Assembly (NCBI GenBank): GCA_047495785.1
Contig: JBLDXI010000010.1
Coordinates: forward strand, 744,001-808,000
Length of the DNA: 64,000 nucleotides
Reading direction: 5' to 3'
Source: Lepidodermella squamata
Taxonomy: Eukaryota; Animalia; Gastrotricha
The notes under the pieces were generated by a model. It was given only the letters and a program-made list of their open reading frames with translations. It was not told the DNA's origin and did no database searches. Positions 4,205 through 39,100 of this stretch are shown here, one piece after another (position 1 is the stretch's first letter; every line of letters begins with the position of its first letter). Position numbers and translations under genes: made by a program.

Positions 4205-7200
4205 TTAATCTAAATATGCGGGCATGATTTCCGATTCTGGTATGTCCATTCCGGCTTCAACGTGTGCTTTTTGGCTTCGAGATGCATCGCTTGTTGACGG
4301 CCTTGAAGACTCAACATTCAAGGGGTTCGCAACCAGCTGACCCTCAGCCATCCTATTACCAAGAATTCCCGCAGCTGCCATTTTCTTAGCCTCTTCCACA
4401 GCCTCGATATGCTTCAGGTAATTCTCCGCTGCATGTTTGTTTCGTATTTTCACCCTCAATTGATGCAACTCCCTCACCCGCCTGGCATCGCGGATTCGTT
4501 TTAGAAAGTGGTTGAAGTTGTGCCGAAGACGAGCCATGTCTCGAGATAGGGTCATGTAGTCCAAGCAAACGACTATTCCCATAAAGAAGCCACAAATTGA
4601 CAAAACCATGGACGCCGTAGCAACAGCGGTCTCTGATTCATAGACCACGACTTTCTTAGGTTTCGGAGCCTTTAAAAGCGCATTCTGAGAACAAAACAGT
4701 GGTTGCTTGTCCCATGTTGAGTTCTCATTGCATCGCCAGTTTGCAAATGAGCTAGTTTGATTCTTACTAGGCTCGTAGCCTCGATTCCAATCACACTCGA
4801 ATGAGATTATATCACCGTAAACAATTGTTTTGATTTCAGACGAAGAATTTAAAATCCGATAACTTGCAATTTCGAATATTGCAGGGACTTTGCAGCTTAC
4901 AACTAAAACGATTACATCAGCCTTAAACCCTGGGTTTTCAAACTGTTCTTACGTAAACAAGACAATGAATTGGTAGACCATACGCCTGAGTCCAAGCAGG
5001 TATTGACTACGGATGACAGTGGAGTCGACTCAGTTCCAGGTTGGACGTACAGGCTGTTAGCTCCTTTCACGCACCTCATTGTTACTTGATCGCCGGAAAA
5101 ATATGTACCAATCTTTGTGCCCTCAAGGATCGCATTCTGCTCGGAGATCGGGTTGCCGCAGGTAACAACTGATAACGAAAGTAGATGTCAAGTTATAATA
5201 TTGCAGATTCGTCACCTCAATACCTGTGCACTGCGGCTGTTCGACTGGCGACCATGTTCCGTTTTTCTGGCAAACCTTGACGAAATAATCGATATCGACA
5301 CTTGGCTTGAAGCCCTTCAAACACGTAAATGACGCCACTCCACCTGTAAAGTTACCAGACACATTGTGGTAGGTGTTTACACCCTCAATAAAGCCTTTGC
5401 ATGTTGGCACTGTAAATTATTAATAAGGAGTTTCCTCTCATCAAAGATTAAATGATTACGTTGGCATTGCGGGGTTCCATCGACCCAAGACCAGCCAGTT
5501 GGAGGCTTGAAGCTACAATAAGCCTCTCCACTTTTAGAACCAGTCATGTTGAAGCCCAAATTACAGGTGTATTTCACTCGATCTCCCATTCGATAAAAAT
5601 CGTTCGTGAAATTCACGTAGGTCGCAGCTGCTAAGCTGGGAGGATCCGGACACGCGGCTGATAAACACTTTGGCTTGTTCGCGTTAACTTGAAACCAGTT
5701 CCCAGTTGCTGGGTTTGGATTGAACGGGTCGCATATGTGCATAGCAGTATCTGAGGCTGATGCTGCTTTGAAACCAGCATCGCAGGTCATTATGGCAGAT
5801 TGCATGTAACCAGCCATTCCTTTGAAAGATGACAACGGTGGAGCAGTCAATGTCCAGCTGGAGTTGGGTGCGAGTTCAATGCCGAGAGGTACACTGGAGC
5901 AGTTGTTTAGAGGGTCTAGTTTAAAAGAATATTTAGAGTGAGCTCAGCATTTAAAAAAATGTCACAGACTTAATCTTCGGCCACAAGTGTAGAAACAACT
6001 AGCTTGAGCTTGCCCACTAGGATCGTTCTCACAGGCGCCAGTTGACGCCCAATCGCCACAGGTGCAGTTGTAGTCAACTGGCATTCGCGGGTCGACGTCA
6101 CACTCGCAAGTTGCGTAGGCCGTACAGCTGGACTGGCACGATGGCCACATGAATCCTGCGTTTGATAAGCACTGGCCTCGATCTTTCCAATTTGTGCACG
6201 AAGGACCGATGTCAGTTTTGACTTTAGTGCATAAGGACTGATTTGACCGAGGCATGCACATGTTCGAGCCTAAACAGATAGCTGCGGCAGGACAAGCCGG
6301 TACGCAGACGTCTATTCGAAAAACAGATTAGGTTTGCTAAATGACCTGAAGCCTCTTCTTACTATCGTCACATTTTGGACCACCGTACAAAGCAGGGCAT
6401 TTGCAGGCGTTGTTTGCTATGCACGTTCCGCCGTTGCTACAATCAGGGATGCAGATAGCTACAGAGGATTACACAAGTCATCATAAACAGCTTCACGCAA
6501 GATCTGGAAAACAAACGCGTCTCACAAGCGCTGCCGTTGTAGAAAGTGGTGCAAATGCAGGTTTTAGTTGAGCGGTCACAGGTGCCACCGTTCTGGCAAC
6601 TCGGGTCGCAAAGATCTGAAGGAGAATAAGCAAACATTGGACTGATTGAATTGACGCCTCGACTTACAATCATTGCACTTTGGGCCACCGTAACGAACAG
6701 GACATTTGCAGGTGTTATCTTTTAGGCACGTTCCGCCGTTGCTACACTCAGGAATGCAGACAGCTAGAATGCAATGTATATCTAATATAAGCAACTACAT
6801 GAAAGAGCAAGAAACAAACGCGTCTCGCAGGTGCTGCCGCTGTAGTACGTGGTGCAATTGCATGTTTTAGTTGAGCGATCACAGGTGCCACCGTTCTGAC
6901 AACTCGGGTCGCAAAGATCTGAAAAGCCATTCAAACACATTGAAATGCAAACTAGTCCAAAATATATGCCGATTTAATAGACAAGGATCTTTTCATCAGG
7001 CTCTTCCTTAACCTATCAGGCAATCAAGTACAGAACACACGGATCTCAAATTCACTCGGAGTTCCAGATGGGGGGAAATTATATTTCTCCATGGGTAGCC
7101 GTGGAGTATCCCTAATTATTGGACGAATTATTTATTATCCATTACGTTTAGAATTCGACCTTGTTATATGAAAACATTCCGCATGATGATCAGAAATTCC

Positions 7201-10200
7201 AAGGGAATATAAAAGGGTGGCATGCAACCTACCCAAAGCCGTTTCATTGAAGGTTGAACGTAGCGTGAACTCCTTTGAACTGTCATTTTGGCGAAGGAAG
7301 ATTTCGTTGTTCGCATCGACGTGAATGAAGAACCCTTGCACGTTGACTGCCTCGTAAGCAATCCCGGATGCCTGAGGCCTTTCGCAGAATGTCGCATCCA
7401 GAGCGAGCCCAGTATTGTTATCGTTAAAGGTAATCTGTAGCCTAAAACCGGTGTGACGAAGGACAAAATTGGGCTTGCTGAAGGATTCAAAAGAGGTGCA
7501 ATTGCCTGTCAGGCCTTTTATCTTCCTCCACTGAAATTCGCTTTTCAAATCAGGATCTGGCTCGATCTGGCTAAATGTCAAGTTGTTTTGCAGGCGAAGA
7601 ACGTAGCAGCTTGCCATTTGGAATACAGGCCGAATCACTAGGATGTTGCACTTGCTAGGTGGCTTGCATTGATTCGAAGGAGCCTTGCATGTACACGTGT
7701 TGCCCAGCAGACATTGTTGGTTCGAACTTGTGCAATTGTTACAGATGGCTATTTGAAAAGGAGAGAAATTATAATTGGCTCGAAAACAAGTCATTTTCCA
7801 GGGCCAATGCATTGGGCCATATGAATAAAAATCGATTTAGGGAAATAGAAAATTAAAATGAAACATACGTGTCTCGCAGGCGCTTCCGTTGTAATAATTA
7901 GGACAAATGCAGGTCTTAGTCAAGTTATTACACGTGCCTCCATTCTGACAACTTGGATTGCACAGAGCTGAGAAAAGGTTGGAGAAACAATGATAGGCGT
8001 TTGCTAAACACCAATTAGACTTACTTGTTTCGCATAGAGAGCCGGTGTAACCAGGTGGGCAGGTGCATTCATTAAACCCAATGCACGAACCACCATTTTT
8101 ACACTGAGGGTTACATGCAACTACGGAAATATATTGATAGATCAATCAAATCAATTTAAGTAATTACCAGCAAACGATCGACACAAATTCTTAACGCTCA
8201 GAAGCTGGCTGGTGTTCAGGCTCGATTTGAAAATTGACAAGCAAGAATAGCTCGAATATGGGGTTGAATCTGGTGGCCTGTAACAAGCTTGATTTGATAG
8301 ATTTTCATAACTTGGTAGTTCAGTTCACCTAGCTCCCACTACTAATCGCGGGGCTGTTGTTGGACTGTTACCAAAACTCATCTCGGCAGTTAAAAACGAT
8401 TCGTTGCAAAATAAACGGCCTATCTTTGAAGGTGTGTCATACACGAATGCCACGAATTGCCAGCCTTGTGAAATGACGCAACGCGGTTCCCAAACCTGAC
8501 TATCTTTCATAAAGTTCATCCATATCTGGTTGTTGTTCGAATGTTCCAGATGAAAACCGTAGGAATTATCAGGCTGCGAAAATTGAAGCATGATAGCTCC
8601 TGAGTAGCTTTTCATTGCATAGAGAAAGACGGCCAAGGTATACGACGTAGTTGAGCCAAAATCCAATTTACTGGAAGCGACCTCGAAAAACCGATTTACC
8701 ACACCTCCGTTAGGGCTAAAACCGGCCTGGAAACCAGTGTTTGGAACTCCATAGGGCCCAGTGACCCATTCAACGGCTGTTGTTGAGAATTGACCGTTTA
8801 GAGCTGTTACTGTCGAAACATCTCCGGCTCCATAATCAGAGTTGAGTGGCCAGAAACCGACTACATCGCTTAGTGAATTGACCGCAACTTGTACTATCGC
8901 TGATGCATTCAGTGCTGGGGAATTAAGTTGCCTTAACTAATGAAATTCATCTAGCTGAAACTCACATATCCCGCATCGCCCTCCGGTGTAGCCACCTGGA
9001 CAGTTGCACAGATTGAAGCCGACGCAAGAGCCTCCGTTTTGGCATTGCGGTGAACATTGAACTATGCATAATCACAATTTTTAATTAGGGAAGGCGAAAG
9101 CTTTAAAACTAACTTTGAAAAAATTGGCAGCTATCTTTGACTTTCAACAATTGGCTCGTATCAAGAGCAACGTTGTGATACGAGACGCAAGCGAATTTCG
9201 CTCTTGAACGTTCATCTTGCCTCCTGATGAACAAGTTTTTTTTTTTAAACTGCCTCCATAGAAACTATTTTTTATGACAATGCTCTAACCTGAGGCCGAT
9301 TTGCATGGTTGTGATATTTCTGAACCCAGAGTCCTCTACTCGAGAAGCTCCAAACGAATTGTTGCAAAATATTGAATTATTTCGGCTGGTCGCATTGTAA
9401 GTGGCAGCCACGAATTGCCACCCACTTGTCATGACACATGGCATGTTAAAGATTGGGCCGGGGGACCCATTACCGAAGTATAAATGATCTGTACCGCCAT
9501 CCTGCCATAGATGGGTCGCCCATTGAGTATCTGGCCTGCTCCACTCAACCAGCGCCATCCTGTTAGTTGCCAGAACATGAACGAATAAAGATACGGTCCA
9601 AGATGCTTTCAGGGCTAAACGGTCATCGTCAAAGCCAATGTATTGATTTGTCGCCCCATCCGTACTGAACGAACCATATGAAGCTCCTAAGAGACCAGTG
9701 TTGAATGAGGGCGCAAGACCGAACCAGCCATCCAATTTGGACGAACTGACATCTCTCGCCCGATAATCAGCTCCCAGAGGCCAATAAGCCATAACACTAG
9801 GTAATAGAGCTAACTTTGATCTGGCGAATGTATCAAGCTCAATTGCTGTGACAGAATGGTTGAAGTTATTTTAAATTATTTGATTACGTTTTGCTCACCT
9901 ATCCCGCAAGATTCGCCGGTATAACCCGCCGCACATAGGCATAAATTGTAACCTACACAAGTTCCGCCATTGAAGCAGGGAATTTTGCATTCAACTGTAA
10001 AATTATGATACCAATATTGCAATATCGCTAATTACAAAAGGACATTACCAGTAAACATTCGACATAAATCGCGAACTTTCAGCAACTCAGCAGCTGTCAT
10101 ATCTTTTGTTATAATAGAAATGCAAGCCAATGACCCAGTATTTCCGACGTTGATTGACGCCGGTGCATAAATTCCAATGTTCACAGTGTCGGATGTCAAT

Positions 10201-12664
10201 GGAATTCCAGTCGGCTGGACGTAACCGCTCCACCAATCGTTGCACAAAGTTCGCAAGTTTTTTGTGGTTGAATTATAAGTCGTGGCTATAAATGTCCACT
10301 TGTTCACGACCACACATTGCGAATTACTACCAACGCCGTCTGGAGCCATCGAGTTTATCCAAATTGTATTTGATTCAGCAGGTGCGCGTGAGAAATGCAT
10401 GCCGTAGGCAGCATTCGAGGTTGATGGCTTCGCGAATTCGATGAAAACATCAAAATTGCTTTGGCTAGCCATGTTTACCCACATTGATATCGACCAAGAC
10501 TTGGCGCCAATGTCGAGTTTCGCCGATTTCACTACGGCATACCGCCGGGGAGAGAGAGTCTTGTCGAAAGACATTGCCGAAGCATCCCGCCCATATGGCC
10601 CTACTGCGAAGGCGTAATCCCTTGACATCATACCATCGATCTTATTGGCTGACGCGTCTCTCGAACCGTATTCGTAACTCAACGGCCAATAGGCTACTAG
10701 GTCCGAGTAGACAGCCAGTCCATCACTTATAACTTTCTTGTTGATAAGAACTTAAAATAAATGCTTCAGAAATGGGTAATAAGATCTCTCCTTCATAGCT
10801 TACAAGTGTCGCATCTTGGAGGTGCCAATGGTGCCGGGCACTTGCAGATATTAACACCAACACATGTACCGCCATTTTTGCAATAGCCAGGTGAGCATGA
10901 GACTAGTGAACAATTTAACGATAGTTTTCGGATGGTGGGCAAGAGGTTCATGGTTTGTATCTTACCTGTGAAAAGCTTACATAGTTCCCTGGCTTGTAGC
11001 ATCTCATTTGCATTCAGTGACTTTGAATAAACTGAAACGCAGGCCATTTTGCCATCAAAATAATTTGTCGTTCCAATCGTGCTGAAAGTCATCACAAAAT
11101 TAAGATATAACTCATTAATCTCGATTTTACTCACCTCTTTCCAATATAAAGCGAATCTGATGTTATAGGTGGTCCAGCTGTCGGGCCATATGTTGCGGCT
11201 ATGAAGGATTCATCGCAGAAGAACTGAAGCAATTTTGTGACATTATTCCAAGTTACAGCTACGAACGTCCACTTATTACTGACCGCACAATTTACTTCAA
11301 GGCCATAAGGATTTCTAGTGTTGAACCAAAGCGTATTGACATCTTGATGATACCAGAGATGCATTCCCCAGTCTGCCCCAGGCGCAGTTGGGTGCAAAAA
11401 TTCTAAAAGAGGATGTTGAAAGGTTGCTGCATTCATCCACAACGAAAGCGTCCAAGAGGAGGTGTTGAAGTTCAGCAGTCCTGAGTTTGCGATAATATAG
11501 CTCGAAGCAGTCAGACCGCTCAAAGATGAAGCCACTTTATTATCGAAAGGACCAGTGTCGTATGACAAATACATTGTCGGTTTTCCGTGGATTTTGTTCG
11601 TGGAAACATCCGTTGCGGCGTATTCGCTGGTAAGCGGCCAGTAGGCAACCAATCCAGGCATGTCGCTCAATTTCGAGGCGATTGTTTCTTTATCGGTAGT
11701 AACTGTTTTTGATGCAATGATACCATTTTTTAATTACCTACTAGGCAACTTACTCAACTCGCATAGGGCTCCAGCATACCCGATTGGGCAGTCGCACACA
11801 TTTTTAGCGGCGCAAGTTCCACCATTTTTGCATTGAGGGTTGCAATCAGCTTGATTAGATCAAGGAATAGGAATATTGAAGCATTATTTTCAATTGACAT
11901 ACGAATGAAAAGCTGACATGTATCTTTGAGTGCTAAGAATTGAGCATCACTCAACGTTGCTTTATGCAGCGAAACGCAGGCATATTTGCCGACCGTGGCC
12001 GGGTAGCCGGGACTTATGAAATAAATGATATTAGAAGGTACTGAAACTTGACGTTCAGCAGCTCTTACCGGTAGCCAATATGTAGCGTTTCTGATGTAAC
12101 TGGAGCGAGAGGAGACGCCAATTTAGGGCCTGAAGCTGTGCTGCAAAAAGCATTCATCTTTGCATTCACCGAGTCGTAGGTGAATCCGACAAATGTCCAC
12201 GTGAAATTCATTACGCAGGGCATTATAGCAACGGACGTACTAATTGAGTTGATGAACAAATCGTTGACGTTGGGCCATTGCCACAGTTGCATCAACATTG
12301 GCAAATACTCGAGAAAGGGCATGCCAGCATTAATCTCAGTCTTGACCCAAAGCGCGAAGCTCAATGAAGAGTTGACAATGTTAACAGCTGGAGAGGTTAT
12401 TGTAACCCAATGTTTGTTAGGATTGTCCACCTGAATAGCAGAGCTTGAGGAACCGAAAGGACCTTGGCCGAAGATCGGAGGTTCCGTGTTTGAAACTCCA
12501 TCGGCTACTTCAAGGGCATCTCGCGCCTTGTAATAACTCGTCAGAGGCCAATATGCTACCGTGCTGGGCTGGAGGCGAAGCTGGTACTGAATGTAACCAG
12601 TATCATAATCGACGCTGGATACTATGCAGAAGGTCGTAGAAAACAAGATCAAGGTTAGCCACAT
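4205..12664 (-). CDS. Multi-exon type-I membrane protein, copy A: SP-(LamG/pentraxin-EGF)x5-EGFs-AbfB-EGFs-ShKx2-sushi x5-TM-tail
   Basis: ATG at 12664 ([17 protein letters not shown]); about 27 short GT-AG introns, mostly phase 1. Five domains begin V(A/G)(Y/F)WPL and contain W(T/Q)FV(A/G)xTY (about 12600-11903, 11705-10965, 10750-10029, 9846-9114, 8913-8167). About 12 EGF modules, mostly CxNGGxC. AbfB-like exon 7748-7233. ShK motifs (C..WK.RGQC..N..FM...C..SC; C..WA..G.C) at 6215-5975. Sushi domains 5905-4690. [24 protein letters not shown]; TAA at 4205. Confidence 0.88.

Positions 12665-15171: not shown

Positions 15172-15173
<2 letters not shown>

Positions 15174-15206
<33 letters not shown>
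15174..15206. repeat. (GT)n microsatellite
   Basis: About 16 perfect GT units. Confidence 0.95.
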
Positions 15207-19085: not shown

Positions 19086-22000
19086 CTAATCTGAACATGC
19101 GGGCATTATTTCTGTTTCTGGTATGTCCATCCCGGCTTCAATATGTGCGTTTTGGTGGCGGGACATATCGCTTGACAACGGCCTTGTAGAGCCAACATTC
19201 AAGGGATTTGCAACCAGCTGACCCTCAGTCACCCGATTACCGAGAAATCCCGCAGTCGCTAATTTCTTAGCCTCTTTCACATCCTCGATATGCTTCAGGT
19301 AATTCTCCGCTGCGTGTTTGTTTCGTAGTTTCACCCTCAATTGATGCAACTGCCTCACTCGCCCAGCATCGCGTAGCCGTTTCAGAAAGTGATTGAAGTT
19401 GTGACGCAGGCGAGCCAAATCACGAGACAAAGTCATATAGTCCAAGCATACAACTATTCCTAGGAAGAAGCCACAAATCGACAAGACGATGGAGGCAGTA
19501 GCAACAGCTGTCTCTGATTCATGGGCCACGACTTTCAAGGCTTTTGGTGCACTTAAAAGAGCATTCTGAGAACAAAACAGTGGCTGCTTGTCCCATGTTG
19601 AATTCTCATTGCACCGCCAGTTCGCGTATGTGCTGGTTTGGTTCTTGCTTGGCTCGAAACCTCGATTCCAATCACACTCAAATGAGATTATATCGTTGTA
19701 AGCGATTGATTCAATTTCAGACGAGGAATTCAAGTAGCGATAATTTGATATTTCGAAAGTAGCAGGGATTTCACAGCTTACCACTAAAAATATTGCAAAG
19801 AACTGAAAAGATCAGCTCTGAATTTTCGAACTGTTCTTACGTAAACAAGCTAATGAATTGGTGGACCATACGCCTGAATCCAAGCAAGTATTCACTACAG
19901 AAGACAGCGGAGTGGACTCGGTCCCGGGTTCGATGTATATGCTGTTTGCACCTTTCACGCATCGCATCGTCACTTGGTCGCCGAAATAATAGGTACCAGG
20001 CTTTGTGCCTTCAAGGATCGCATTCTGCTCAGCAATCGGATTACCGCAAGTAACAACTGGTAAAGGTAGTAGACATTGTTCAATTACAGATTCATCAGCT
20101 CAGTCAGTACCTGTGCACTGCGGCTGTTCTATAGGCGTCCATGTTCCGTTTTTCTGGCAAACTTTGACGAAATAATCGATATCAACACTTGGCTTGAAGC
20201 CCTTCAAACACGTAAATGACGCCACTCCACCTGTAAAGTTACCAGACACGTTGTGATAGGTGTTTACGCCCTCAACAAAGCCTTTGCATGTTGGCACTGT
20301 GAATTATTAATAAGGAGTTTCCACTCATCAAAGATTAAATGATTACATTGGCATTGAGGGGTTCCATCGACCCAAGACCAGCCAGTTGGAGGCTTGAAGC
20401 TGCAATAAGCCTCGCCGCTTTTAGACCCAGTCATGTTGAAGCCCAAATTACAGGTGTATTTTACCCGATCTCCCATGCGATAGTACTCATTTGTGAAATT
20501 CACGTAGCTCGCAGCTGCTAAGCTGGGAGGATCCGGACACACGGCTGATAAACACTTGGGCTTGTTCGCGTTAACTTGAAACCAGTTCCCAGTTGCTGGG
20601 TTTGCATTGAACGGGTCGCAAATGTGCATTGCAGTGTCTGAGGCTGATGCTGCTTTGAAACCGGCATCGCATGTCATTAGGGCAGACTGCATATAACCAG
20701 CCATTCCTTTGAAAGATGACAACGGGGGTGCAGTCAATGTCCAGCTGGAGTTGGGTGCGAGTTCAATGCCGAGAGGTACACTGGAGCAGTTGTTTAGAGG
20801 GTCTAGTTCAAAAGGAATATGTAGAGCGAGCTCAACATTAAAAAATGTCACATACTTAATCTTCGGCCACAAGTGTAAAAACAACTAGCCTGAGCTTGCC
20901 CACTTGGATCGTTCTCGCAGGCGCCAGTTGACGCCCAATCGCCACAGGTGCAGTTGAAATCAACTGGCATTCGTGGGTCGACATCGCACTCGCAAGTTGC
21001 GTAGGCCGTGCAGCTGGATTGACACGATAGCCACATGAATCCAGGGTTCGATAGACACTGGCCTTGATCTTTCCAGGTTTTACACGAAGGACCGATGTCA
21101 GTTTTGACTTTAGTGCATAAGGACTGATTTGAATGTGGCAAGCACATATTCGAGCCCACACAGCTAGCTGCAGTAGGACAAGCCGGTAGGCAGACGTCTT
21201 TAAGATTTGAAGAAAAGCGATGACATGCTTGCATCGAAGCTTCCACTTACCTTCATCGCATTTTGGGCCACCATATAAAGCAGGGCATTTGCAGGTGTTA
21301 TTTCCTATGCACGTTCCGCCGTTGCTGCAATCAGGGATGCAGATTGCTATAGAAGAAAATCGATATTAGAAAAACAGCTATATGAGAGTCCTGCAAACAA
21401 ACGCGTCTCACAGGTGCTGCCTTTATAGTACGGCGTGCATTTGCAGGATTTAGTTGAGCTATCACAGGTGCCACCGTTTTGGCAACTCGGGGAGCAAAGA
21501 TCTGAAGTAGAATAAGCAAGGTTTGGAAAAATCGATTTGAAGCCTCGACGTACAATCATCGCATTTTGGACCAGTGTAACGATCAGTACATTTGCAGGTA
21601 TTATCTTTTAGGCACGTTCCACCATTGCTGCAGTCAGGGATGCATATTGCTACAATGTAATATATATTTAATATAAGCAACTACATGAATGAGCGAAAAC
21701 GAACGCATCTCGCAGGTGCTGCCGGTGTAATACGTGGTGCAAATGCAGGTTTTAGTAGAGCTATCACAGCTGCCACCGTTCTGGCATCTCGGGTCGCAGA
21801 GATCTGAAAAAGCCAATTTCTAATCAGTCCAAAATGTATGCTAATTTCACATGCAGCCTATACCTAACGCCGTTTCATTGAAGGTCGTACGTAGCGCAAA
21901 ATCTTTTGAACTGTCATTCTGGCGAAGGCCGATTTCGTTGTTCGCATCGACATGAATGAAGAACCCTTGGAAATTGACAGCCTCGTAAGCAACCCCGGAT

Positions 22001-25000
22001 GCCTGAGGCCTTTCGCAGAATGTCGCATCTTGGACGAGCCAAGGATTGTTATCGTTTAAGGCAACTTGTAGCCTAAAGTTGGCGTGACGAAGGACATAAT
22101 TGGGCTTGCTGACGGATTCGAAAGATGTGCAATTGCCTGTCAGGCCAGGTATCTTCTTCCACTGAAATTCGCTGTTCAATTCAGGATCTGGCTCGATGTT
22201 GCTAAATGCGAGATTGTCTTGAAGGCGAATAACGTTGCAGCTTGTGATTTGAAATACAGGCCGAATCACAAAAACATTGCACATGCTAGGCGGCTTGCAC
22301 AATTGATTCGAAGGAGCCTTACACGTACACGTGTTGGCACGAAGACATTGCTGGTTCGAACTTGTGCAGTTGTTACAGATGGCTATACGATATGTAAAAA
22401 GTTATCATTGGCTTGAAAACAATGGTTTTCATGTTGTCAAAGGGAGTATTATGATATGAATAAAAATAAAAATTGATATTGAATAGGTGAGGAATTTTGT
22501 GATCAGGGATTATTGCTTCGGTAACAGGGCAGTTTCCGTGTTTCATTAGTATAAATTTAGCGATTTCCATATTTCATCGAATGATAGCCAAGGCTATATT
22601 TTCTCCAAATTCGAAAAAATATTGAACAAAATCGGGAAAGTGCTCGAGGGGGCTTTTATTCGAGGGAGGCATTATTAACACTTTAACTGCCAAAATAGAC
22701 TGCGATCGAGATTTATTGGACCTTTTTTGCCGTCATTTCGCCCTACGACGCATCGCTGACCCGAAGTAAAAGAGATTTGGACAGACCCAGGATTAGGATC
22801 CAAATCTCGATCTCGTAGTCCATTCTGGCAGTTAAAGTGTTAAGCCAACCAAAGAAAATCATTTTCCATTTACTTTACGGGAATTAAAATGAAACATACG
22901 CGTCTCGCAGGTACTTCCCTTGTAATAGGTTGAACAACTGCACGTCTTGGTCAAGCCATTACATGTACCGCCATTCTGGCAACTTGGATTGCACAGGCCT
23001 GAGAAAAGGTTGAACAAACGATGATACCGAACATTGAGCATCTACTAAACACCATTTGGACTTACTGGTTTCGCAAAGGGAGCCGATGTAACCAGGCGGA
23101 CAGGTACATTCATTGAACCCTGTGCACGAACCGCCATTTTTACATGAAGAGTTGCATGCAACTGCGGAAAGGTATAGTGGTAAATCGAAATTAGAAATAA
23201 AAAAAATATGCACCAGTAAACAATCGGCACAAATTCTTAATGCTCAGTAACTGGCTGGTGTTTAGGCTCGACTTGTGAATGGACAGGCAAGAATAGCTCG
23301 AATATGAGGTTGAATCTGGTGGTCTGTAACAACATTTTTTGAAATGATGTGCATAATTTGATAGATCAATTCACCTAGCTCCTACTACAAATCGTGGGGC
23401 TGTCGATGGACTGTTGCCGAAACTCTTCTCGGAGGATAAAAAAGCGTCTTTGCAAAAGAATCGGCCTTTGTTCGAAGGCTTGTCATATACGAATGCCACG
23501 AACTGCCAGCCTTGTGAAATGACGCAAGGCGGCTCCCAGTTCTGATTATCCTTCTCAAAGTTCATCCAAATTAGGTTGTTGCTCATGTGTTCTAAGTGGA
23601 ATCCATAGTTGTTATCAGGCTGCGTAAACTGCAGCATGATAGTTCCCGGGTAACTTATCATTGCATAGAGAAAAATGGCAAATGTGTACGATGTTGTTGA
23701 GCCAAAATCCACTTTGTTGGAAGCGACCTCGAAAAACCTATTAACTACACCTCCATCCGGGCTTAAACCGGCCTGGAATCCGGTGTTTGGAACTCCATAA
23801 GGCCCAGTGACCCATTCAACGGCTGGTGTTGAGAATAGGCTGTTTACAGCTGTTACTGTCGAAACATCTCTGGCTCCATAATCAGAGGTGAGTGGCCAAA
23901 AGCCAACTAAATCGCTCAGTGAATTTACTGCGACTTGAAAGTTCGCTGATGCATTCAATGCTGGGGGTTTAGGTTGGCTTAACTAATGAAATTGATCCAG
24001 CTAAAACTTACCAATTCCACATCGCTCTCCAGTGAATCCACCTGGACAGTTGCAGAGATTGAAGCCGACGCAAGAACCTCCGTTTTGGCATTGTGGTGAA
24101 CATTGAACTATGAATAATCACATCGTTCTATTCAATTAGGCGCAAATTTTGAAAATTACTTTGAAAATATTGGCAGGCATCTTTGACTCGCAGCAATTGA
24201 CTTGTATCAAGAGCGTCGCCGTGATACGAGACGCAGGCAAATTTCGCTTTGGAACGCTCATTATCTTGCCGCCTGGAGAACAATTTTTCAAAATGAACTC
24301 AATAGGATAAATTTATGATAAAAATCCACAGACCTGAAGCCAATTTGCATGGTTGTGATATTTGTGAACCCAGAGGCCGACACTTGAAAAGCTCCGAAGG
24401 AATTGTTGCAAAACATGGAATAATTTTGCTTGACCGCATCATAAGTGGCAGCCACAAATTGCCATCCACCTCTCATTGCACACGGCATGGAGAAGAATGG
24501 TGGACCTAAGTATAACCGGTCTGTACCGGTATCCTGCCAAAGATGGGTCGCCCACACAGTATCTGGCCTACTCCATTCAACAAGTGGCATCCTGTTATCC
24601 GAAAGAATATGAACGAATAAAGCCACCGTCCAAGATGCTTTCAGGGCTAAACGGTCGTCGTCGAAGCCGATGTATTGATTTGACACCCCATCCGTACTGA
24701 ACGAACCATAAGAAGCTCCTAAGAGACCGGTGTTGAAGGAGGGAGCAAGACCGAACCAGCCATCCATTATAGACGGACTAGCATCTCTCGCCCGATAATC
24801 CGCCCCTAGAGGCCAGTAAGCCATCACGCTAGGTAATAGAGCTAACTTGGATTGGGCGAATAAATCAAGCTCAATTGCTGTTAAAAAACGACTGATGTTA
24901 TTTAGAATTATTTGATGAAAGGATCGCTCACCTGTCCCACAGGATTCGCCGGTGTACCCCACCGCACATTGGCATAAATTGTAGCCAACGCAGGATCCAC

Positions 25001-28000
25001 CATTGTAGCAGGGAATTCGGCATTCAACTATATAAAAAAATGCCAGCAATATTGTGAAACTGCTCAGAATAGGACATTACCAGTAAACATTCGACATAAA
25101 TCGCGAACTTCCCGCAACTCAGCAGCGGTCATTTCGTTGGTTATAATAGAAATGCAAGCCATGGACCCAGTATTTCCAATGTTAACTGACGCCGGGGCAT
25201 AAATTCCAATGTTCACAGAGTCGGATGTCAATGGAATTCCAGTTGGCTGGACGTAACCGCTCCACCAATCGTTGCATAGCGTTCGCAAGTTTTTCGTTGT
25301 TGAGTTATAAGTCGCGGCTATAAATGTCCACTTGTTGACGACCACACATTGCGAATTACTACCAACGCCGTCTGGAGCCATCGAGTTTATCCAAATTGTA
25401 TTTGATCCAGGAGGTGCGCGTGAGAAATGCATGCCGTAGGCAGCATTCGAGGTTGATGGCTTGACGAATTCGATGAAAACATCAAAATCGTTTTGGCTAG
25501 CCATGTTTACCCACATTGATATCGACCAAGACTTGGCGCCGATGTCAAGTTTCGCCGATTTCACTACGGCATATCGCCGGGGAGAGAGAGTCTTGTCGAA
25601 AGCCATTGCCGAAGCATCCCGCCCATATGGCCCGACTGCGAAGGCGTAATCCCTTGACATCATACCATCGATTTTATTGGCTGATGCGTCTCTCGAACCG
25701 TATTCATAGGTCAAAGGCCAATAGGCTACTAGGTCCGAGTAGACTGCCAATGTATCGCTTATAAGTTTCTTGTTGATTAGAACTAAAAATAAATGCTTCA
25801 AAGGTGGGTATTAGGTCTAGCTTCATACAGGGAGTCCGTAAAGTCGAGGCAATATAAATATGTAGCATAGTACATTACATAGCAAGGGAAAAATCGATAA
25901 TCTTGTTTTTTTCATCGATCGTGATATAATAATAATATGACTGTGAGAAAGACAGAGGCACTGAGCACTGCATGGCCGATCAGAGAATCCACTGTCATAG
26001 CGGAACGTACTGCTCAGAATACAACAGAAGCAAAAAATGAAGGGACGAAAAAGACGTTTTTTCTTGCGTTTTCTTCAATACTCTCCCCATTCCGTATGAA
26101 TTTGCGGAATGAAAGATGCGCGCATAAGAATTTCTAAGCGTATGTAATCCTAGTGCGCACGCGAGAAAAAATATATGAATTAACCTCAAGAAACGACCAT
26201 ATACACATACTTTTATCAAAAACGCATTGCTGCGATTTTCTTCTTGTCTATAAAAGATGACAGAGAGGTAGCTTCTAGAGCTTCCAGGCTTGATTGTTCC
26301 GGTCAGTCTTTGTTGGACCACAATCGTGGATAAATAAGGATTGTGGTCACATGGACAGTAGGCTTCTGCTGTCGTTCGTGGATCGCTTCCTATTCGAAAA
26401 CTTCAGCTTATTGCTCTGACTCCCTAACCAGTTTGATCTCTATCGCTAAAATTATCAAGTTCAAGGACGCAAGGACAGTGAGAGTTAGGACGCATCTCCG
26501 GCAGGTTGGGTGTAGTACTCAAAGTCTGCCCTGCGGGGAGGGATTCAGGGTCATGGCGCGAGAATCAGCATATTTTAGGATATTTTCAGCCAAAATTACG
26601 GTAAAATACCGTTAGCTAAAGCTCGCTTCGCTCACAGGTGTAGCTAAACTCACGCTTTCTGGAGTCTAATGTGAAATGCTTGAACGATTTTTTCTAATTA
26701 TTGGCTAATGAGAACATAAGAAGAACAACATTTTTACGTGAATCCAAGTTGTGACCCGTGGGGAATAGGAATAGGGCGGAAATAGCACTTTTAGCAGAGA
26801 GCGAAGTACCACCAGGGATGGTAGGAGTCATTCCTACCGGTTCAATCGGTTCGCAAAGTCGAAGACCAATGATTTTGAACATCTTAGCCACTTCTGCTGT
26901 CCTACTTCGCTCTCAGGTTGAAGGAAGCAACCTTTTTACCTCAGTAAATCCGCTTTGGAAGATAAATTCCGATAATTCCTGCTGCAAGAGTAGTTGGACG
27001 AGTCTAACACGACGGAGCGAACGAACAATTCATACAAATTGGTGGTTTCAAGGTCGAATACGCTAAATAAATGAAAACCCACCGGCGGGATTTTGAAATC
27101 CTACGGTGCTCGGCCAGATTACTCCGCGAGTAATCTTTCTGAGAATTTTCAACCCGTTTCACCGTGCATTTAATTATTATTTCAATGAAAACCAGTCCTG
27201 GGTGAACAATTGCCCACAGGACACACAATTTTCCGATGCCATTTGTTCAGCGAATGAAATATCAAGAATTCCCACGGTAAATAGCCGCATCCTTCATTGC
27301 AGAGGAAAACAAGCCAATAAACGCGGGTATTTGCCGCATTGAATTTCGGGAAACTGCGTTAAGTTGTTGCAAAAGCTACGTATTCCAGTTCAAAAAGAAT
27401 AAATTAACATTTTACCCACCATACTCCTTATTATTATATCCTAATCCATACAAAAGACGCCTTATCGATTTTTTCAGCGCGCTTGTTTTTTTAGCAAAAT
27501 ATGCAGAAATGTTCTAAAGCGCTGCACGAAATTTCGAGGTAAAAACCTGGCCCCTTTGCGAACCGCACGGTAGAATTCCCGTTACAAGGAGATAAATGTT
27601 CTTTGTAGTATTTCTTATACTTTCACCGAAGGAAATCTGAAAATACACGGTGAAAGTAACGGACGAAACCAATTTTCATGACTTCACCAGCTATTTCCAT
27701 TAGGTTTGAAAGTATTTCTGTGATCATCAGGTGTGTTCACGGTAAAAATCGTTTAAACTTGGCACTTGGCCATCCACGAAGATGAGATGCAACAAATGAG
27801 TTGACCGTGTACAATTAATTAATTCAAAGTGGAACGCTTCGAACCAAGTGGTATTTGGGACAAAAACTCATTCCATCCGACATTAGATGTCTTCTTTAAT
27901 CAACTTTTAAAATTTTCTTCGGTGAAAATGTTAAGCTTATTAACAAAATCACTTTGGCTACAAAAAAGAATGAATCTACCGTCATGACTAGAATGATATC

Positions 28001-30039
28001 GCTGTTTTCCGGTGAGAATTCGGTAAAAGCAACCTGGTTTTTCATGGTGTTCGCCTGGTTCGTACTTACATTATTATTATTATACGGTCCAGAAAAAATG
28101 CTAGATTATCGATTTTTCCCTTGCTATATAATGTACTATGCAATATATTTATATTGCCTCTATGACTTTACGGACTCCCTGTAGCTTACAAGTGTCGCAT
28201 CTTGGAGGTGCCAACGGTGCGGGGCACTTGCAGATATTCACCCCGACACAAGTACCGCCATTTTTGCAGTAGCCAGCAGAACAGGATACTAGGAAACACT
28301 TCCCGTTCGTTTTTCAAATAATCAAGAGATCTATATCTTACCTGTGAAAAGCTTACATAGTTCCCTGGCTTGCAGCATCTCATTTGGATTCAGCGACTTT
28401 GAGTAAACTGAAACGCAGGCCATTTTGCCATCAAAATAATTTGTAGTTCCGATCGCGCTGAAAGTTAACACATCTTAAGATATAGCTCAGTAATCAGGAT
28501 TTTACTCACCTCTTTCCAATATATAATGTATCTGACGTTATAGGTAGTCCAGCTGAAGGACCATATGTCGTGGATATGAATGATTCATCGCAGAAGTATT
28601 GCAGCAATTTCGTGATATTATTCCAAGTTACAGCAACGAATGTCCACTTATTACTAACCGCACAATTTACTTCAAGACCAGCGGGATTCCTGGTATTGAA
28701 CCAAAGAGTATTGATATCTTGATGATACCAGAGATGCATTCCCCAGTCAGCCCCGGGCATAGTCGGGTGCAGAAATTCCAAAAGAGGATGTTGAACAGTT
28801 GCTGCATTCATCCACAACGAAAGCGTCCAAGAAGAGGTGTTGAAGTTCAGCAATCCCGAGGTTGCGATAATATAGCTCGAAGCAGTCAGACCGCTCAAAG
28901 ATGAAGCCACCTTGTTATCGAACGGACCAATGTCGTAGGTCAAATACATTGTAGGTTTTCCGTGGATTTTGTTCGGGGAAACATCCGTCGCACCGTATTC
29001 GCTATTCAGAGGCCAGTATGCCACCAATCCTGACATTTCACTCACTTTCGAGGCGATTATATCTTTATCGGTAGCGACTGTTTTGATCAAATTAAATCAA
29101 GGATCGCTGGTTTCCTGTTTGCAACTTACTCAACTCGCATAGCGCCCCAGCATATCCAGCTGGGCAGTCACAGACGTTTTTAGCAGCGCATGTTCCACCA
29201 TTTTTGCATTGAGTTTGGCAATCGGCTAGGATAAATTCAAAAATAGCTCAAGTCATTATTTTGAAATCACTTACGAGTGAAAAGTTGGCAAGTCGCTTTG
29301 AGCGCTATGAATTGAGCGTCACTCAACGTTGCTTTATGCAGCGAAACGCAAGCAAATTTGGCAACAGAAGCGTTGTAGCCGGCGCTTTTTTTATAAATAG
29401 AATAGATATTAGATGCAATCAAAGCTGAGGCTCATCAATAGGTTACCGATAGCCGAACCCCAACGTGTCGGACACAACTGGAGGGGTAGGAGACGACCAT
29501 GTAGGCCCCGAAACGGTACTGCAAAAAACATTTATCTTTGCAGCCCCCGAGTCGTAGGTGAATCCAACAAAAGTCCACGTATTATTCATTGCGCATGGCG
29601 TCCAACCACCCGCATGATTGGCGTTGGCGAACAACCTATCGACAGCATCGTACTGCCACATGTGCGTCTTCTGCGGGAAATATTCGAGCAAGGGCATGAC
29701 GCCATTAATCTCAGTCTTGACCCAAGCCGCAAAACTCCACGAAGAGCTGCCGACATTCAAAACTGATGACTGCACTGTAACCCAATGCTGATTCGGGTAG
29801 TCAACTTGAATAGCTGAGCTGGCTGGACCGAAAGGACCTTGCCCGAAGATCGAAGGTTCCATGTTCGAAACTCCGTTGGCTACTTCAAGGGCATCTCGCG
29901 CCTTGTAATAACTCGTCAGGGGCCAATATGCAACTGTACCAGGCTGGAGCCGAAGCTGGTATTGAATGTAACCAGTATCATAATCGACGCTGAATACTCC
30001 GCAGAGGATCGCGGAAAACAAGAACAAGGTTGAACGCAT
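19086..30039 (-). CDS. Multi-exon LamG-EGF-AbfB-ShK-sushi-TM protein, copy B
   Basis: ATG at 30039 (MRSTLFLFSAILCGVFS); exon-by-exon colinear with copy A. The transposon insertions fall in introns, and no frame disruption was seen in the exons inspected. Confidence 0.85.
22679..22839. mobile_element. piggyBac-like MITE (161 bp)
   Basis: TTAA on both sides (22675-22678, 22840-22843). TIR CACTTTAACTGCCA(A/G)AAT(A/G)GACT...GATCGAGATTT. Lies in an intron of copy B. Confidence 0.8.
25828..28181. mobile_element. Non-autonomous Tc1/mariner-type TIR element (2354 bp)
   Basis: ~76 bp imperfect TIRs starting CAGGGAGTCCGTAAAGTC, with a TA duplication. The empty site cttcaTAgcttac is intact in copies A (~10795) and C (~39915). 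No transposase ORF recognised. Confidence 0.88.
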
Positions 30040-33180: not shown

Positions 33181-36100
33181 TCAATCGGAATATACGGGCA
33201 CGATTTCTGTCTCCGGTATGTCCATCCCGGCTTCAACATGTGCTTTTTGGCTTCGAGATACATCGCTCGACAATGGCCTTGATGACCCGGCATTCAAAAG
33301 GTTTGCAACCAGCTGACCCTCAGTCACCCGATTACCGAGAAATCCCGCAGTCGCTAATTTCTTAGCCTCTTTCACATCCTCGATATGCTTCAGGTAATTC
33401 TCCGCTGCTTGTTTGTTTCGTAATTTCGCCCTCAATTGATGCAACTGCCTCACTCGCCCAGCATCGCGTAGTCGTTTCAGAAAGTGGTTGAAGTTGTGAC
33501 GCAGACGAGCCATGTCTCGGGCAAGTGTCATATAGTCCAAACACACTACTATTCCCATAAAGAAGCCGCAAATCGACAAGACCATGGAGGCAGTAGCAAC
33601 AGCAGTCTCCGATTCATAGGCGACGACTTTCAAAGGTTTCGGAGCACTTAAAAGAGCATTCTGAGAGCAAAACAGTGGCTGCTTGTCCCATGTTGAATTC
33701 TCATTGCATCGCCAGTTCGCATATGTGCTTGTTTGATTCTTGCTCGGCTCGTAACCTTGATTCCAATCACATTCGAATGAAATTATTTGGTCGTAAACGA
33801 TTGTTTCGATTTCAGACGAAGAATTCAAAATTCGATAACTTGCAATTTCGAATGTCGCTGGGATTTCGCAGCTTACCACTGAAAAAATTGCATTTCTCCT
33901 CAAATGATATTTCCGATTAAAACGCTTACGTAAACAAGCTAATGAATTGGTGGACCATACACCTGAATCCAAGCAGGTATTTACCACAAATGGCATAGGC
34001 GTCGACTCAGTACCAGGTTCGACGTACAAGCTGTTTGCTCCCTTTACACATCTCATGGTTACTTGATCGCCGAACATATAAGTACCAGGCTTTGTGCCTT
34101 CAAGGATCGCATTCTGCTCGGTGATCGGGTTCCCGCAAGTAACAACTGGTAAAGGTAAAAGAAGACGTGTTTAAATTACAGAATCATCAGCTCAGTCAGT
34201 ACCTGTGCACTGCGGCTGTTCTATAGGCGTCCATGTTCCGTTTTTCTGGCAAACTTTGACGAAATAATCAATATCGACACTTGGCTTGAAGCCCTTCAAA
34301 CACGTAAATGACGCCACTCCACCCGTAAAGTTACCAGACACGTTGTGGTAGGTGTTTACGCCCTCAACAAAGCCTTTGCATGTTGGCACTGTGAATTATT
34401 AATAAGGAGTTTCCACTCATCAAAGATTAAATGATTACATTGGCATTGAGGGGTTCCATCGACCCAAGACCAGCCAGTTGGAGGCTTGAAGCTACAATAA
34501 GCCTCTCCACTTCTAGATCCAGTCATGTTGAAACCAGAATTGCATGTGTACTTCACTCGATCTCCCATTCGATAGAAATCGCTCGTGAAATTAACGTAGG
34601 TCGCAGCTGCTAAGCTGGGAGGATCCGGACACACGGCTGATAAACACTTTGGCTTGTTCGCGTTAACTTGAAACCAGTTCCCAGTTGCTGTGTTTGGATT
34701 GAACGGGTCGCATATGTGCATGGCCGTGTCTGAGGCTGATGCTGCTTTGAAACCAGCATCGCATGTCATTAGGGCAGATTGCATGTAACCAGCCATTCCT
34801 TTGAAAGATGACAACGGGGGTGCAGTCAACGTCCAGCTTGAGTTGGGTGCGAGTTCTATGCCGAGGGGTACACTGGAGCAGTTGTTTAGAGGGTCTAGTT
34901 TAAAAGAATATTTAGAGTGAGCTCAGCATTTGAAAAATTGTCACAGACTTAATCTTCGGCCACAAGTGTAGAAACAACTAGCTTGAGCTTGCCCACTTGG
35001 GTCATTCTCGCAGGCCCCAGTGGAGGCCCAATCGCCACAGGTGCAGTTGTAATCAACTGGCAATCGCGGGTCGACATCACACTCGCAAGTTGCGTAAGCT
35101 GTGCAGCTGGATTGGCACGATGGCCACATGAATCCCGCGTTTGATAGGCACTGGCCTTGATCTTTCCAAGTTTTGCATGAAGGGCCTATGTCAGCTTTGA
35201 CTTTCAAGCATAATGACTGACTTGAAAGCGGCAAGCACATGTTCGAGCCCAAACAGCTAGCTGCAGCAGGACAAGCCGGTACGCAGACGTCTTTTAGAAA
35301 AAGATGAGGTTTGAATTACTTTATTTGAAGCCTCGACTTACTATCATCGCATTTTGAACCACCGTAGAAAGCAGGGCATTTGCAGGTGTTATTTGCTATG
35401 CACGTTCCACCGTTGCTACAATCAGGAATGCAGATGGCTACAGGGGATTACATATTTGATATAACCAGCTGGAAAAAGAGCTAGAAAACAAACGCGTCTC
35501 ACAAGTGCTGCCGTTATAATAAGTTGTGCAAATGCAGGTTTTAGTTGAGCTGTCGCAGGTGCCACCGTTCTGGCAACTCGGATCGCAAAGATCTGAAAAA
35601 GCCATTTTCGAACCAGTCTAAAATATTTGCTAACTTGCGACCTACCCAAACCCGTTTCATTGAAGGTTGAACGTAACGTGAAATCCTTTGAACTGTCATT
35701 CTGGCGCAGGAAAATTTCGTTGTTCGAATCGACATGAATGAAGAACCCTTGGAAGTTGACAGCCTCGTAAGCCACCCCGGATGCCTGGGGCCTTTCGCAG
35801 AATGTCGCATCCTGAGCGAGCCAAGGATTGTTATCGTTAAACGTAACCTGTAGCCTAAAGGCGGTGTGACGAAGGACAAAATTGGGCTTGCTGACGGATT
35901 CGAAAGATGTGCAATTCCCTGTCAGGCCAGGTATCTTCTTCCACTGAAATTCGCTGTTCAACTCAGGATCTGGCTCGTCGTGGCTAAATGCGAAGTTGTT
36001 TTGAAGGTGAAGGACGTTGCAGCTCACGATTTGAAATACAGGCCGAATCACTAGGATGTTACACTTCCTAGGCGGCTTGCATTGATTCGAAGGAGCCTTG

Positions 36101-39100
36101 CACGTACATGTGTTGCCCAGAAGACATTGTTGGTTCGAACTTGTACAGTTGTTACAAACGGCTATTCGACATGGAAGAAACTATTATTGGTCCGAACGCG
36201 AGGTTTCTAGGATCTAGGTGTTGGCTCATATGGATAGGCATAAAAATCTATTTTGAGAAACTTAAGATTTGCTACTACAGATAATCTACCAGAAAATAGT
36301 ATGTACATAGTTGCTGTTTTATTTTCTAATCGAAGAATTTTCCAAATTCGAAAATTGAAATAAACATACGCGTCTCGCAGATACTTCCGTTGTAAAAGGG
36401 AGGGCAATTGCAGGTCTTGGTCAAGACATTGCACGTGCCACCATTCTGACAACTTGGATTGCACAGACCTGGCAAAAAGGATGAAGAAACGATTATTCTT
36501 TAACCTGAACATATGCATAACCCCAATCGGACTTACTCGTTTCGCAAATGGAGCCGGTATAACCAGGCGGGCAGCTACACACATTGAACCAAATGCACGA
36601 ACCGCCGTTTTTACACGAAGGGTTGCACGCAACTGCGGAAAGTTATTGGTAAATCGGATATAGAAACAATAAATCGAGAAATCGAGAAATGTACCAGCAA
36701 ACGATTTGCATAAATTCTTAATGCTCAGAAGCTGGCTGGTATTCAGGCTCGATTTGAAAATTGACAAGCAAGAATAGCTCGAATATGGCGTTGTATCTGA
36801 TGGCCTATGCCAAGCTTGATTTAACGGATTTTCATACCCTGATAGTTCAATTTACCTAGCTCCCACTACAAATCGCGGAGCTGTTGTTGGACTGTTACCA
36901 AAACTCGTATCGGAAGGTAAAAACGAGTCGTTGCAAAATAAACGGCCTTTGTTTGACGGTTTATCATACACAAATGCCACGAATTGCCAGCCTTGTGAAA
37001 TGACGCAGGGCGGTTGCCAGTTCTGATTATCCTTCATAAAGTTCATCCAAATTAGGTTGTTGCTCATGTGTTCCAAATGAAAACCAAAGGAATTATCAGG
37101 CTGCGTAAATTGAAGCATGATAGCTCCTGGGTAACTTTTCATTGCATAGAGAAAAATGGCAAATGTGTACGATGTTGTTGAGCCAAAATCCACTTTGTTG
37201 GAAGCGACCTCGAAAAACCTATTAACTACACCTCCATCCGGGCTTAAACCGGCCTGGAAACCGGTGTTTGGAACTCCATAAGGCCCAGTGACCCATTCAA
37301 CGGCTGGTGTTGAGAATAGGCCGTTTAGAGCTGTTACTGTCGAAACATCTCTGGCTCCATAGTCAGAGGTGAGTGGCCAAAAGCCAACTAAATCGCTCAG
37401 TGAATTTACTGCGACTTGAAAGTTCGTTGATGTATTCAAAGCTTGGCGATTAAATCGTGTTAAGCAATGAACAAATTGATCTAGCTGAAACTCTACTTAC
37501 CCACTCCACATCGTTCCCCAGTGAAACCAACTTGACAGTTGCAGAGATTGAAGCCAGCGCAAGTACCTCCGTTTTTGCATTGCGGTGAACATTGAACTAT
37601 GAATGGTATCAATAACTAATTGAATAAGGCGCAAACCATTGAACTAACTGTGGAAATATTGGCAGGTATCCTTGACTTTCAACAATTGGCTCGTATCAAG
37701 AGCAACGTTGTGATACGAGACGCAAGCGAATTTCGCTTTTGAACGTTCGTCTTGCCGCCTTCATAAAAATTTATAAATAAAATAAATAAAATAAAATAAA
37801 ATAAATAAAATATTTTCGATGGCCATGAGCTAACCTGAGGCCAATTTGCATGTTTGTGAGATTTGTGAACCCAGCGGCCACAACTTGAAAAGCTCCAACA
37901 GAGTTGTTGCAAAATAGAGTATGGTTTTGGCTGGTCGCATCGTAAGTGGCAGCCACAAATTGCCAACCGCTCGTCATGACACACGGGATATTAAAGAATG
38001 GGCCGGAGGGCCCATTGCCCAAGTATAAACGATCTGTACCGGCATCCTGCCATAGATGGGTAGCCCATGAAGTATCTGGCCTACTCCACTCAACAAGCGC
38101 CATTCTGTTAGTCGCCAGAACATGAACAAATAAAGACACCGTCCAAGATGCTTTGAGGGCTAATCGGTCGTCGTCGAAGCCGACGTATCGACTTGTCACC
38201 CCATCTGTGATAAAAGATCCATACGACCCTCCTAGTAAGCCAGTGTAGAAGGAAGGAGCGAGAGCGAACCAACCATCCAATTTGGACGAACTGACATCTC
38301 TCCCTCGATAATCAGCTCCCAGAGGCCAGTAAGCCATCACGCTAGGTAATAGAGCTAACTTTGATCGGGCGAATGTATCAAGCTCAATTGCTGTAATAAG
38401 AAATACTTTGAGTTATTCAAAATCATCTTAAAATAATGTCACTCGCCTGTCCCGCAAGATTCGCCGGTATACCCCGCCACACATAGACAGAGATTGTAGC
38501 CAACACAAGATCCACCATTGTAGCAGGGAATTCTGCATTCAACTATAAAATAACGTCACCAACTTGCAAAATCAATAAGAATACGACATTACCAGTAAAC
38601 ATTCGACATAAATCGCGAACTTTCAGCAACTCCGCGGCAGACATTTCTTTCGTAATAATAGAAATGCAAGCCATGGACCCAGTATTTCCAACGTTAGTTG
38701 ACGCCGGGGCATAAATTCCAATGTTCACAGTGTCGGATGTCAATGGAATTCCAGTTGGCTGGACGTAACCGCTCCACCAATCGTTGCATAGCGTTCGCAA
38801 GTTTTTCGTTGTTGAGTTATAAGTCGCGGCTATAAATGTCCACTTGTTGACGACCACACATTGCGAATTACTACCAACGCCGTCTGGAGCCATCGAGTTT
38901 ATCCAAATTGTATTTGATCCAGGAGGTGCGCGTGAGAAATGCATGCCGTAGGGAGCATTCGAGGTTGATGGCTTGGCGAATTCGATGAAAACATCATAAT
39001 CGTTTTGGCTAGCCATGTTTACCCACATTGATATCGACCAAGACTTGGCGCCGATATCAAGTTTCGCCGATTTCACTACGGCATACCGCCGGGGAGAGAT

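Follow-up and report, generated by a model that had tools for sequence, protein, structure and literature searches.

The window analyzed here is a 64,000-nucleotide stretch of the genome of the gastrotrich Lepidodermella squamata (contig JBLDXI010000010.1; G000:C10:744001-808000), taken from a 121-Mb assembly of 151 contigs with very short introns. It contains three tandem genes, A, B, and C, which belong to a single-pass membrane-receptor family with at least 14 members on the contig. The membrane-distal, lectin-like domain of these receptors, LamG1, contains a patch of 30 or 31 codons in which nonsynonymous divergence reaches its gene-wide maximum. This hotspot is genuine and exceeds every other in the gene, and neither age nor mutation rate accounts for it. 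To the following interpretation we give an even chance: a constant scaffold carries a paralogue-specific, specificity-determining segment that evolves at an approximately neutral rate, with one recurrently replaced residue and, maybe, episodic positive selection in A and C.

Divergence of the patch

The patch lies on the minus strand between the conserved anchors LEY and (M)N(F/N)[11 protein letters not shown], and translation reproduced exactly all three peptide strings given for it in a preliminary description of this DNA (coordinates in Table 1). Between A and C, 17 of the 31 patch residues differ, as compared to 2 of 103 in the upstream mature part and 9 of 48 downstream. The corresponding nucleotide p-distances are 0.35, 0.06, and 0.12. 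Thus, the statement that A and C are almost identical on both sides of the patch is true upstream only, because of the nine downstream differences, eight of which fall in one loop. This second, smaller hotspot may pack beside the patch in the predicted three-dimensional structure.

The nonsynonymous (pN) and synonymous (pS) proportions of differences were compared in 30-codon windows over all large exons of the gene, which has about 2,000 codons. The patch is the maximum of pN over this whole length. For A and C, the patch window has a pN of 0.357 (median, 0.048; 95th percentile, 0.146) and an ordinary pS of 0.295; for A and B, pN is 0.423 (median, 0.064) and pS is somewhat raised, at 0.556. 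At the nucleotide level, no other well-aligned 90-nt window of the 8.8-kb A-C alignment, which includes the introns, diverges as much as the patch (p-distance, 0.32; median, 0.12). The A-C intron windows reach p-distances of 0.26-0.28, and non-coding DNA averages 0.236. Within the patch, the framework residues are fixed: a central Trp-Gln, one Leu, and a terminal Pro-Cys. The length is 30-31 residues in 11 of 14 genes even though the non-coding A-C DNA is 31% gapped, so the patch does not decay freely.

Outside the patch exon, exons had ratios of nonsynonymous to synonymous substitution rates (dN/dS, omega) of 0.1-0.35 and dS values of 0.2-0.9; omega was 0.17-0.27 in LamG4 and LamG5. The LamG3 and sushi exons had been described as nearly invariant. 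They are conserved, but not to that degree: LamG3 and sushi1-3 are 93-95% identical, with dS of 0.18-0.29, and sushi4 and sushi5/TM (transmembrane) are 80-86% identical.

The preliminary description also placed a smaller hotspot at the equivalent position of LamG4, with a four-residue deletion in B, and both are indeed present. Mean pairwise pN, calculated in 15-codon windows over paralogue pairs, peaks at 0.43 in the LamG1 patch and at 0.21-0.28 in the equivalent strand-loop region of each of LamG2-5. As these domains have peaks of their own, the hotspot is strongest in the most distal domain yet is not, as had been proposed, confined to it. Mean pS is flat, at approximately 0.5, through the exon and across the family. 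A mutational hotspot was rejected because mean pS in the patch equals that of the flanks.

The paralogues do not share this divergence equally. Eleven further genes were retrieved from the contig and codon alignments were made for LamG1-5; a multi-gene alignment of sushi1-2 was excluded because of a mis-picked high-scoring segment pair. In this set, A, C, g04, and g11-g14 bear strongly diverged patches. The patch of B is of a type common to g03, g05-g08, and g10, from which it differs by nucleotide p-distances of 0.18-0.22, about as in the flanks. Hypervariability is therefore specific to some lineages. Patch diversity is germline-encoded across paralogues and arises from duplication and point substitution; small in-frame indels probably contribute, as do, occasionally, short conversion tracts between paralogues.

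Codon substitution and gene conversion

Using the Nei-Gojobori method for A and C, the upstream part of the exon gave a dS of 0.288, a dN of 0.008, and an omega of 0.03; the patch gave 0.446, 0.490, and 1.10; and the downstream part gave 0.197, 0.119, and 0.60. The rest of the LamG1 domain is under strong purifying selection. From upstream to patch, dN rises approximately 60-fold and dS only approximately 1.5-fold, so escape from conversion by an old tract is not enough to account for the patch. A dN/dS of at most 1 with proportionally raised dS, named in the preliminary description as the pattern that would speak against diversifying selection, is absent, although omega is not clearly above 1.

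To control for circularity, patch codons were classed by their variation among the other 12 paralogues and compared with the gene-wide dS. At the 24 patch codons that vary in those paralogues, the A-C dN is 0.61, which with the gene-wide dS of 0.37 gives an omega of 1.65. Flank codons that are likewise variable in other paralogues number 87, and their A-C dN is 0.068.

Site models were fitted using a purpose-written codon-likelihood engine (GY94+F3x4) with the tree and branch lengths from IQ-TREE, the branch lengths being held fixed. The engine matched the IQ-TREE log-likelihood (-4945.49 vs -4945.488), and in 12 null simulations the likelihood-ratio test (LRT) statistic for M2a over M1a was at most 5.2. 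For LamG1, this statistic was 24.9 for the whole exon in 14 genes, 18.5 in 10 genes, and 15.6-19.6 on patch-only trees. The signal always came from one codon in the first patch loop, the only codon with robust omega>>1, which has been replaced again and again. The LRT for LamG2-5 was about 0, with no class of omega>1. The omega=1 class took in 51-57% of the codons in the patch, as compared to 22% in the flanks; overall, approximately 55-60% of patch codons change at the rate of silent sites. In a FUBAR-like scan, two LamG1 sites exceeded 0.9, namely a codon just before the patch and the hot codon (posterior, 0.97); LamG4 had seven weak sites. The only hit of a FEL-like test (p = 0.005) was a codon just before the patch. 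In the first half of the patch, 10 of 15 nucleotides differ whatever the register, and a compensated frameshift was therefore rejected there as the source of the burst of amino acid change.

Conversion bears on a further explanation, that the A and C flanks were homogenized and the patch retains older divergence. A Sawyer-type permutation test for long concordant runs, which points to conversion between paralogues, gave p = 0.0005 for A-B and p = 0.0015 for both A-g06 and g03-g08. With a Bonferroni limit of 0.0011, only A-B passes, and the g03-g08 run, which lies inside the patch, just misses. In the latter pair (L031 and L036), 26 concordant polymorphic sites span 42 alignment columns of the second half of the patch, where the two share the same 13 residues between differing flanks; this points to the transfer of half a patch from one to the other by a short conversion tract. 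The closest pair also shifts along the gene: dS in LamG3 is 0.185 for A-B and 0.287 for A-C, and in LamG1 it is 0.55 and 0.29, respectively. Moreover, patch dS is 1.5-2.5 times flank dS in four sister pairs. Nevertheless, we consider retained divergence an improbable cause of the hotspot. The disproportion between dN and dS argues against it, as ordinary constraint in an old tract would leave omega low, and mean pS is flat across the exon. Furthermore, the A-C flank dS of 0.29 is near the gene-wide value, from which it follows that the flanks were not recently homogenized. When the entire assembly was searched for possible donors of the A and C patches, no copy was closer to either than A and C are to each other. 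Escape from conversion may contribute to the divergence of the patch, but it cannot explain it.

A search of the whole assembly for allelic contigs returned only the known paralogues and one decayed fragment, each gene being present once. Between genes A and B, at 15470-15739 on the minus strand, lies a decayed and truncated LamG1-type pseudo-exon, 82% identical to nucleotides 132-401 of the B exon. It includes the first half of a B-type patch and has two frameshifts and one stop codon. Probably left behind by a paralogue that has been lost, this pseudo-exon could, in principle, serve as a conversion donor.

Predicted fold and role of the variable segment

An AlphaFold model of LamG1, calculated from an alignment of 34 LamG exons, has 12 strands, a predicted local distance difference test (pLDDT) score of 91.7 (89-94 over the patch), and a predicted template modeling (pTM) score of 0.85. 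The model adopts the two-sheet jelly-roll beta-sandwich of the ConA-like / LG / pentraxin fold, with VIA Z scores of 10-15 to carbohydrate-binding modules, LG/LNS domains, and pentraxins. The top Foldseek and VIA rows were lectin-like jelly-roll domains of clostridial neurotoxin-family entries; they share the fold only, and nothing toxin-like is present. In profile searches, LamG2 and LamG3 each scored 32.8 bits against PF13385 (cut-off, 27.6), and LamG4 (18.8) and LamG5 (26.1) fell below the cut-off. A protein-atlas feature search returned PF13385 clusters at 0.93-0.95. In the model, the patch comprises the end of strand b6, the short strands b7-b9 (residues 109-112, 118-122, and 128-132), and three loops (104-108, 113-117, and 123-127). 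Both loop and strand positions vary. Over the domain, the variable columns are model residues 96-97, 104-108, 113-118, 121-131, and 165-178.

In a marginal PTX3 profile match (E = 0.015), the 'LFSY' strand and the position of the pentraxin signature fall opposite the conserved flanks, with the patch between them, and residues 3-136 of SAP superposed on model residues 54-182. By interpolation rather than residue superposition, the patch would correspond roughly to residues 55-88 of CRP/SAP. In CRP, this stretch holds Asp60 and Asn61, which bind Ca2+, and Phe66, Thr76, and Glu81 of the phosphocholine pocket (PMC6503050). The signature itself, His-x-Cys-x-Ser/Thr-Trp-x-Ser, is not conserved: opposite HLCGTWNS of PTX3 stands the consensus tWtFvaitydS, in which the His and Cys are absent. 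Moreover, the first patch loop, L-P-M-L-M in A and F-P-Q-K-T in B, has no acidic pair, and the second Ca2+ loop would fall beyond exon 1. With the signature not conserved, and the acidic ligands apparently not either, LamG1 cannot be counted among the pentraxins. Even so, its patch corresponds to the segment through which pentraxins contact their ligands; a similar role is therefore plausible, which lends indirect support to the ligand-binding face proposed in the preliminary description.

By this rough correspondence, the patch would be the ligand-contact, specificity-determining part of the distal domain. It may have diverged such that different paralogues recognize different ligands, and the A and C lineages may have diverged episodically and fast after their duplication.

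Several observations weigh against this proposal. Across the 14 paralogues, patch omega is 0.56-0.59, significantly below 1, and no test gives omega>1 for the whole patch. The difference at the 24 variable patch codons has a one-sided Fisher p of 0.03 that is uncorrected for a region picked by eye. The FEL-like test, with a free synonymous rate, found no significant patch codon, its power being low with 14 sequences. A branch-site test with A and C as foreground gave an LRT of 2.09 (p = 0.07), and neither A alone, C alone, nor their stem reached significance as foreground. Near the end of the patch, A's TSVAIM and C's TGPVAM may, by inspection, also reflect a frameshift or two in-frame indels; the latter would reduce dN slightly. 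Seven paralogues (B, g03, g05-g08, and g10) share a fairly conserved patch, with p-distances of 0.11-0.27, like those of their flanks. In the model, the variable loops belong to consecutive hairpins and therefore probably lie at both ends of the sandwich. Finally, the LamG1 exon alone matches no Pfam family at E<=0.01.

The main rival explanation, pure relaxed constraint, holds that the patch is the most tolerant part of the fold and drifts neutrally with no role in specificity. The A-C omega of approximately 1, the family-wide value below 1, the assignment of most patch codons to the omega=1 class, and the non-significant branch-site test are all consistent with it, as is the fact that the equivalent region is the most variable in all five LamG-like domains. 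It does not, however, account for the one codon at which omega>>1 whatever the tree, for an A-C dN at the variable patch codons that exceeds the gene-wide dS, or for a length that is conserved where neutral DNA abounds in indels. The hotspot peaks 1.5-2 times higher in the distal domain than in LamG2-5, and an omega of 0.03 in the rest of the A and C domain would be odd if the exposed segment were functionless. We regard relaxed constraint as possible, though on the whole doubtful. The A-C divergence of the patch may have been driven by positive selection or simply permitted by low constraint.

The preliminary description read the patch as a ligand-binding face under diversifying selection, in the manner of allorecognition or immune receptors; in its fullest form, this would be pervasive diversifying (balancing) selection at the level of alleles. 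A hotspot in the membrane-distal domain on a conserved scaffold, a recurrently replaced codon, a tandemly expanded family, and an A-C omega of 1.1-1.65 all speak for such a system. The assembly, however, has one copy of each gene, omega is below 1 family-wide, only one site is supported, and the FUBAR-like scan assigns LamG4 no fewer weak candidates than LamG1. The conserved patch of seven paralogues likewise does not fit pervasive diversification of the allorecognition type, and we hold this interpretation to be very unlikely. Diversifying selection as such is partly supported, as patch dN is raised without a matching rise in dS and one codon has omega>>1; it is not established, given an A-C omega of approximately 1.1, the family-wide omega, and the branch-site test.

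A bolder form of the specificity proposal is that the family is a germline-encoded recognition repertoire for self/non-self, mate, or microbe, with the b6-b9 segment as the specificity determinant. That segment would be kept diverse by positive selection and by the exchange of short, cassette-like conversion tracts among paralogues, possibly also from pseudo-exons such as that between A and B, and would be hyperpolymorphic in populations. This we consider unlikely.

If the patch is a specificity determinant, it would provide a compact, testable example of a lectin-fold receptor repertoire diversifying on a fixed scaffold, in a lineage without described recognition receptors and with candidate residues already pinpointed. 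As it stands, it is a well-documented rate hotspot, useful for annotation and population work, and does not so far amount to evidence for allorecognition or immunity.

The receptor family and comparison with known systems

The architecture of the three genes was established by reading domains exon by exon rather than from a joined spliced protein. Each begins with a signal peptide and five ConA-like / Laminin_G_3-like modules, every module being followed by a short tail exon and an EGF. These are followed by further EGFs, an AbfB-like domain (PF05270, E=8e-15), a cysteine-rich ShKT-like exon, and sushi repeats (PF00084). The C-terminal end comprises a single membrane span and a charged tail of approximately 130 residues. 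A search of the assembly found 14 orthologous N-terminal exons on the contig, with 46-100% protein identity, and, among the matches listed, more than 130 further LamG-type exon matches. The family is arranged in three clusters along the contig, at 0.75-0.79, 0.97-1.04, and 1.17-1.28 Mb.

Table 1. Coordinates of the patch, the hotspots, and the genes and exons that contain them
Feature	Position	Strand	Basis
Hypervariable patch, copy A: 31 codons, model residues L104-V134	12212..12304	-	Translation, AlphaFold model, gene-wide pN maximum
Hypervariable patch, copy C: 31 codons	41326..41418	-	Translation; 17/31 residues unlike A
Patch, copy B: 30 codons, type common to six other paralogues (g03, g05-g08, g10)	29590..29679	-	Translation, nucleotide distances
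Single recurrently replaced codon: patch residue 3, Met in A, 10 residue types among 14 paralogues	12296..12298	-	Site models
Second, smaller A-C hotspot: long loop before last strand of exon 1	12074..12163	-	pN 0.181; 8/14 loop residues differ
Gene A	4208..12664	-	Exon-by-exon reading, Pfam matches
Gene B, tandem paralogue	19089..30039	-	Exon comparison
Gene C, tandem paralogue	33184..41778	-	Exon comparison
Exon 1 of gene A: signal peptide and most of N-terminal (membrane-distal) ConA-like / Laminin_G_3-like domain	12068..12664	-	Open frame, fold, paralogy to LamG2-5
Exon 1 of gene B	29446..30039	-	ATG at 30039
Exon 1 of gene C	41182..41778	-	ATG at 41778
LamG4 exon of A, with smaller hotspot at equivalent position	9268..9801	-	B counterpart 24312-24833 with 4-residue deletion there

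The AbfB-type domain is a carbohydrate-binding domain, located here inside an animal membrane receptor (A, 7138-7836 on the minus strand; B, 21862-22392; C, 35614-36180). When 10 kb of each of the other genes was searched using tblastn, its exon was found only in g05 and g07, apart from a partial match where the g04 stretch ends. The number of modules differs among paralogues, as no orthologous hit was obtained for LamG3 in g05 (L033) or for LamG5 in g07 (L035). In gene B, approximately 2.5 kb (25800-28330) separates the LamG2 tail/EGF exon from the LamG3 exon, as compared to approximately 100 nt in A and 0.8 kb in C; the extra DNA is probably an insertion and contains short open reading frames (ORFs) only. 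Elsewhere in the window, the plus strand carries an intronless ORF of 817 codons (43598-46051) with a receptor-like look, in which a large N-terminal domain is followed by several hydrophobic spans. A (TG)n microsatellite occupies 15150-15200 of the A-B intergenic region.

Relatives of the family are few. A word search for related ORFs returned none at E<=1e-10, and a HMMER pass over 1.84 billion representative proteins yielded eight matches, the best with 29% identity, all of them unnamed metagenome or run-assembly ORFs. With so few and such remote relatives, the family appears limited to a poorly sampled lineage, and the best reading is that it is an undescribed receptor family of this lineage. 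Literature searches for the receptor architecture and for a 'hypervariable' LNS rim gave nothing usable.

The LamG1 model resembles the pentraxin domain of CRP, SAP, and PTX3 in its beta-sandwich fold, with VIA Z scores of 10-11 to PTX3, SAP, and a zebrafish pentraxin. It differs in that the signature is not kept, nor apparently are the Ca2+-ligand residues, the flank reading [10 protein letters not shown], and in that it is a module of a membrane receptor, whereas pentraxins are secreted pentamers.

LNS domains carry their ligand sites, Ca2+ sites, and splice inserts close together, on the loops along one rim of the sandwich. The receptors described here share the fold of the laminin, agrin, and neurexin LG/LNS domains (Z, 10-12), and LamG2 and LamG3 pass the PF13385 threshold. 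Their LG-type modules alternate with EGF modules, as in alpha-neurexin (PMC3084293). In contrast to LNS domains, diversity here derives from substitution between paralogous genes and not from alternative splicing, LamG1 lacks a Pfam match, and no Ca2+ site was identified.

Hydractinia Alr1/Alr2 and Botryllus fuhc/fester are clustered single-pass receptors with variation in the outermost domain, and fester also has sushi repeats. The Alr and fuhc/fester systems are defined by extreme allelic polymorphism together with the functional genetics of fusion and rejection. The family described here is similarly composed of single-pass receptors in gene clusters, with the outermost domain the most variable. 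Unlike in those systems, the divergence seen is between paralogues only, omega does not exceed 1 overall, and the variable module has another fold. Snail FREPs and similar invertebrate lectin-type families resemble it in their tandem expansion and in having a conserved scaffold with a hotspot in the recognition domain. They differ from it in domain type and overall architecture.

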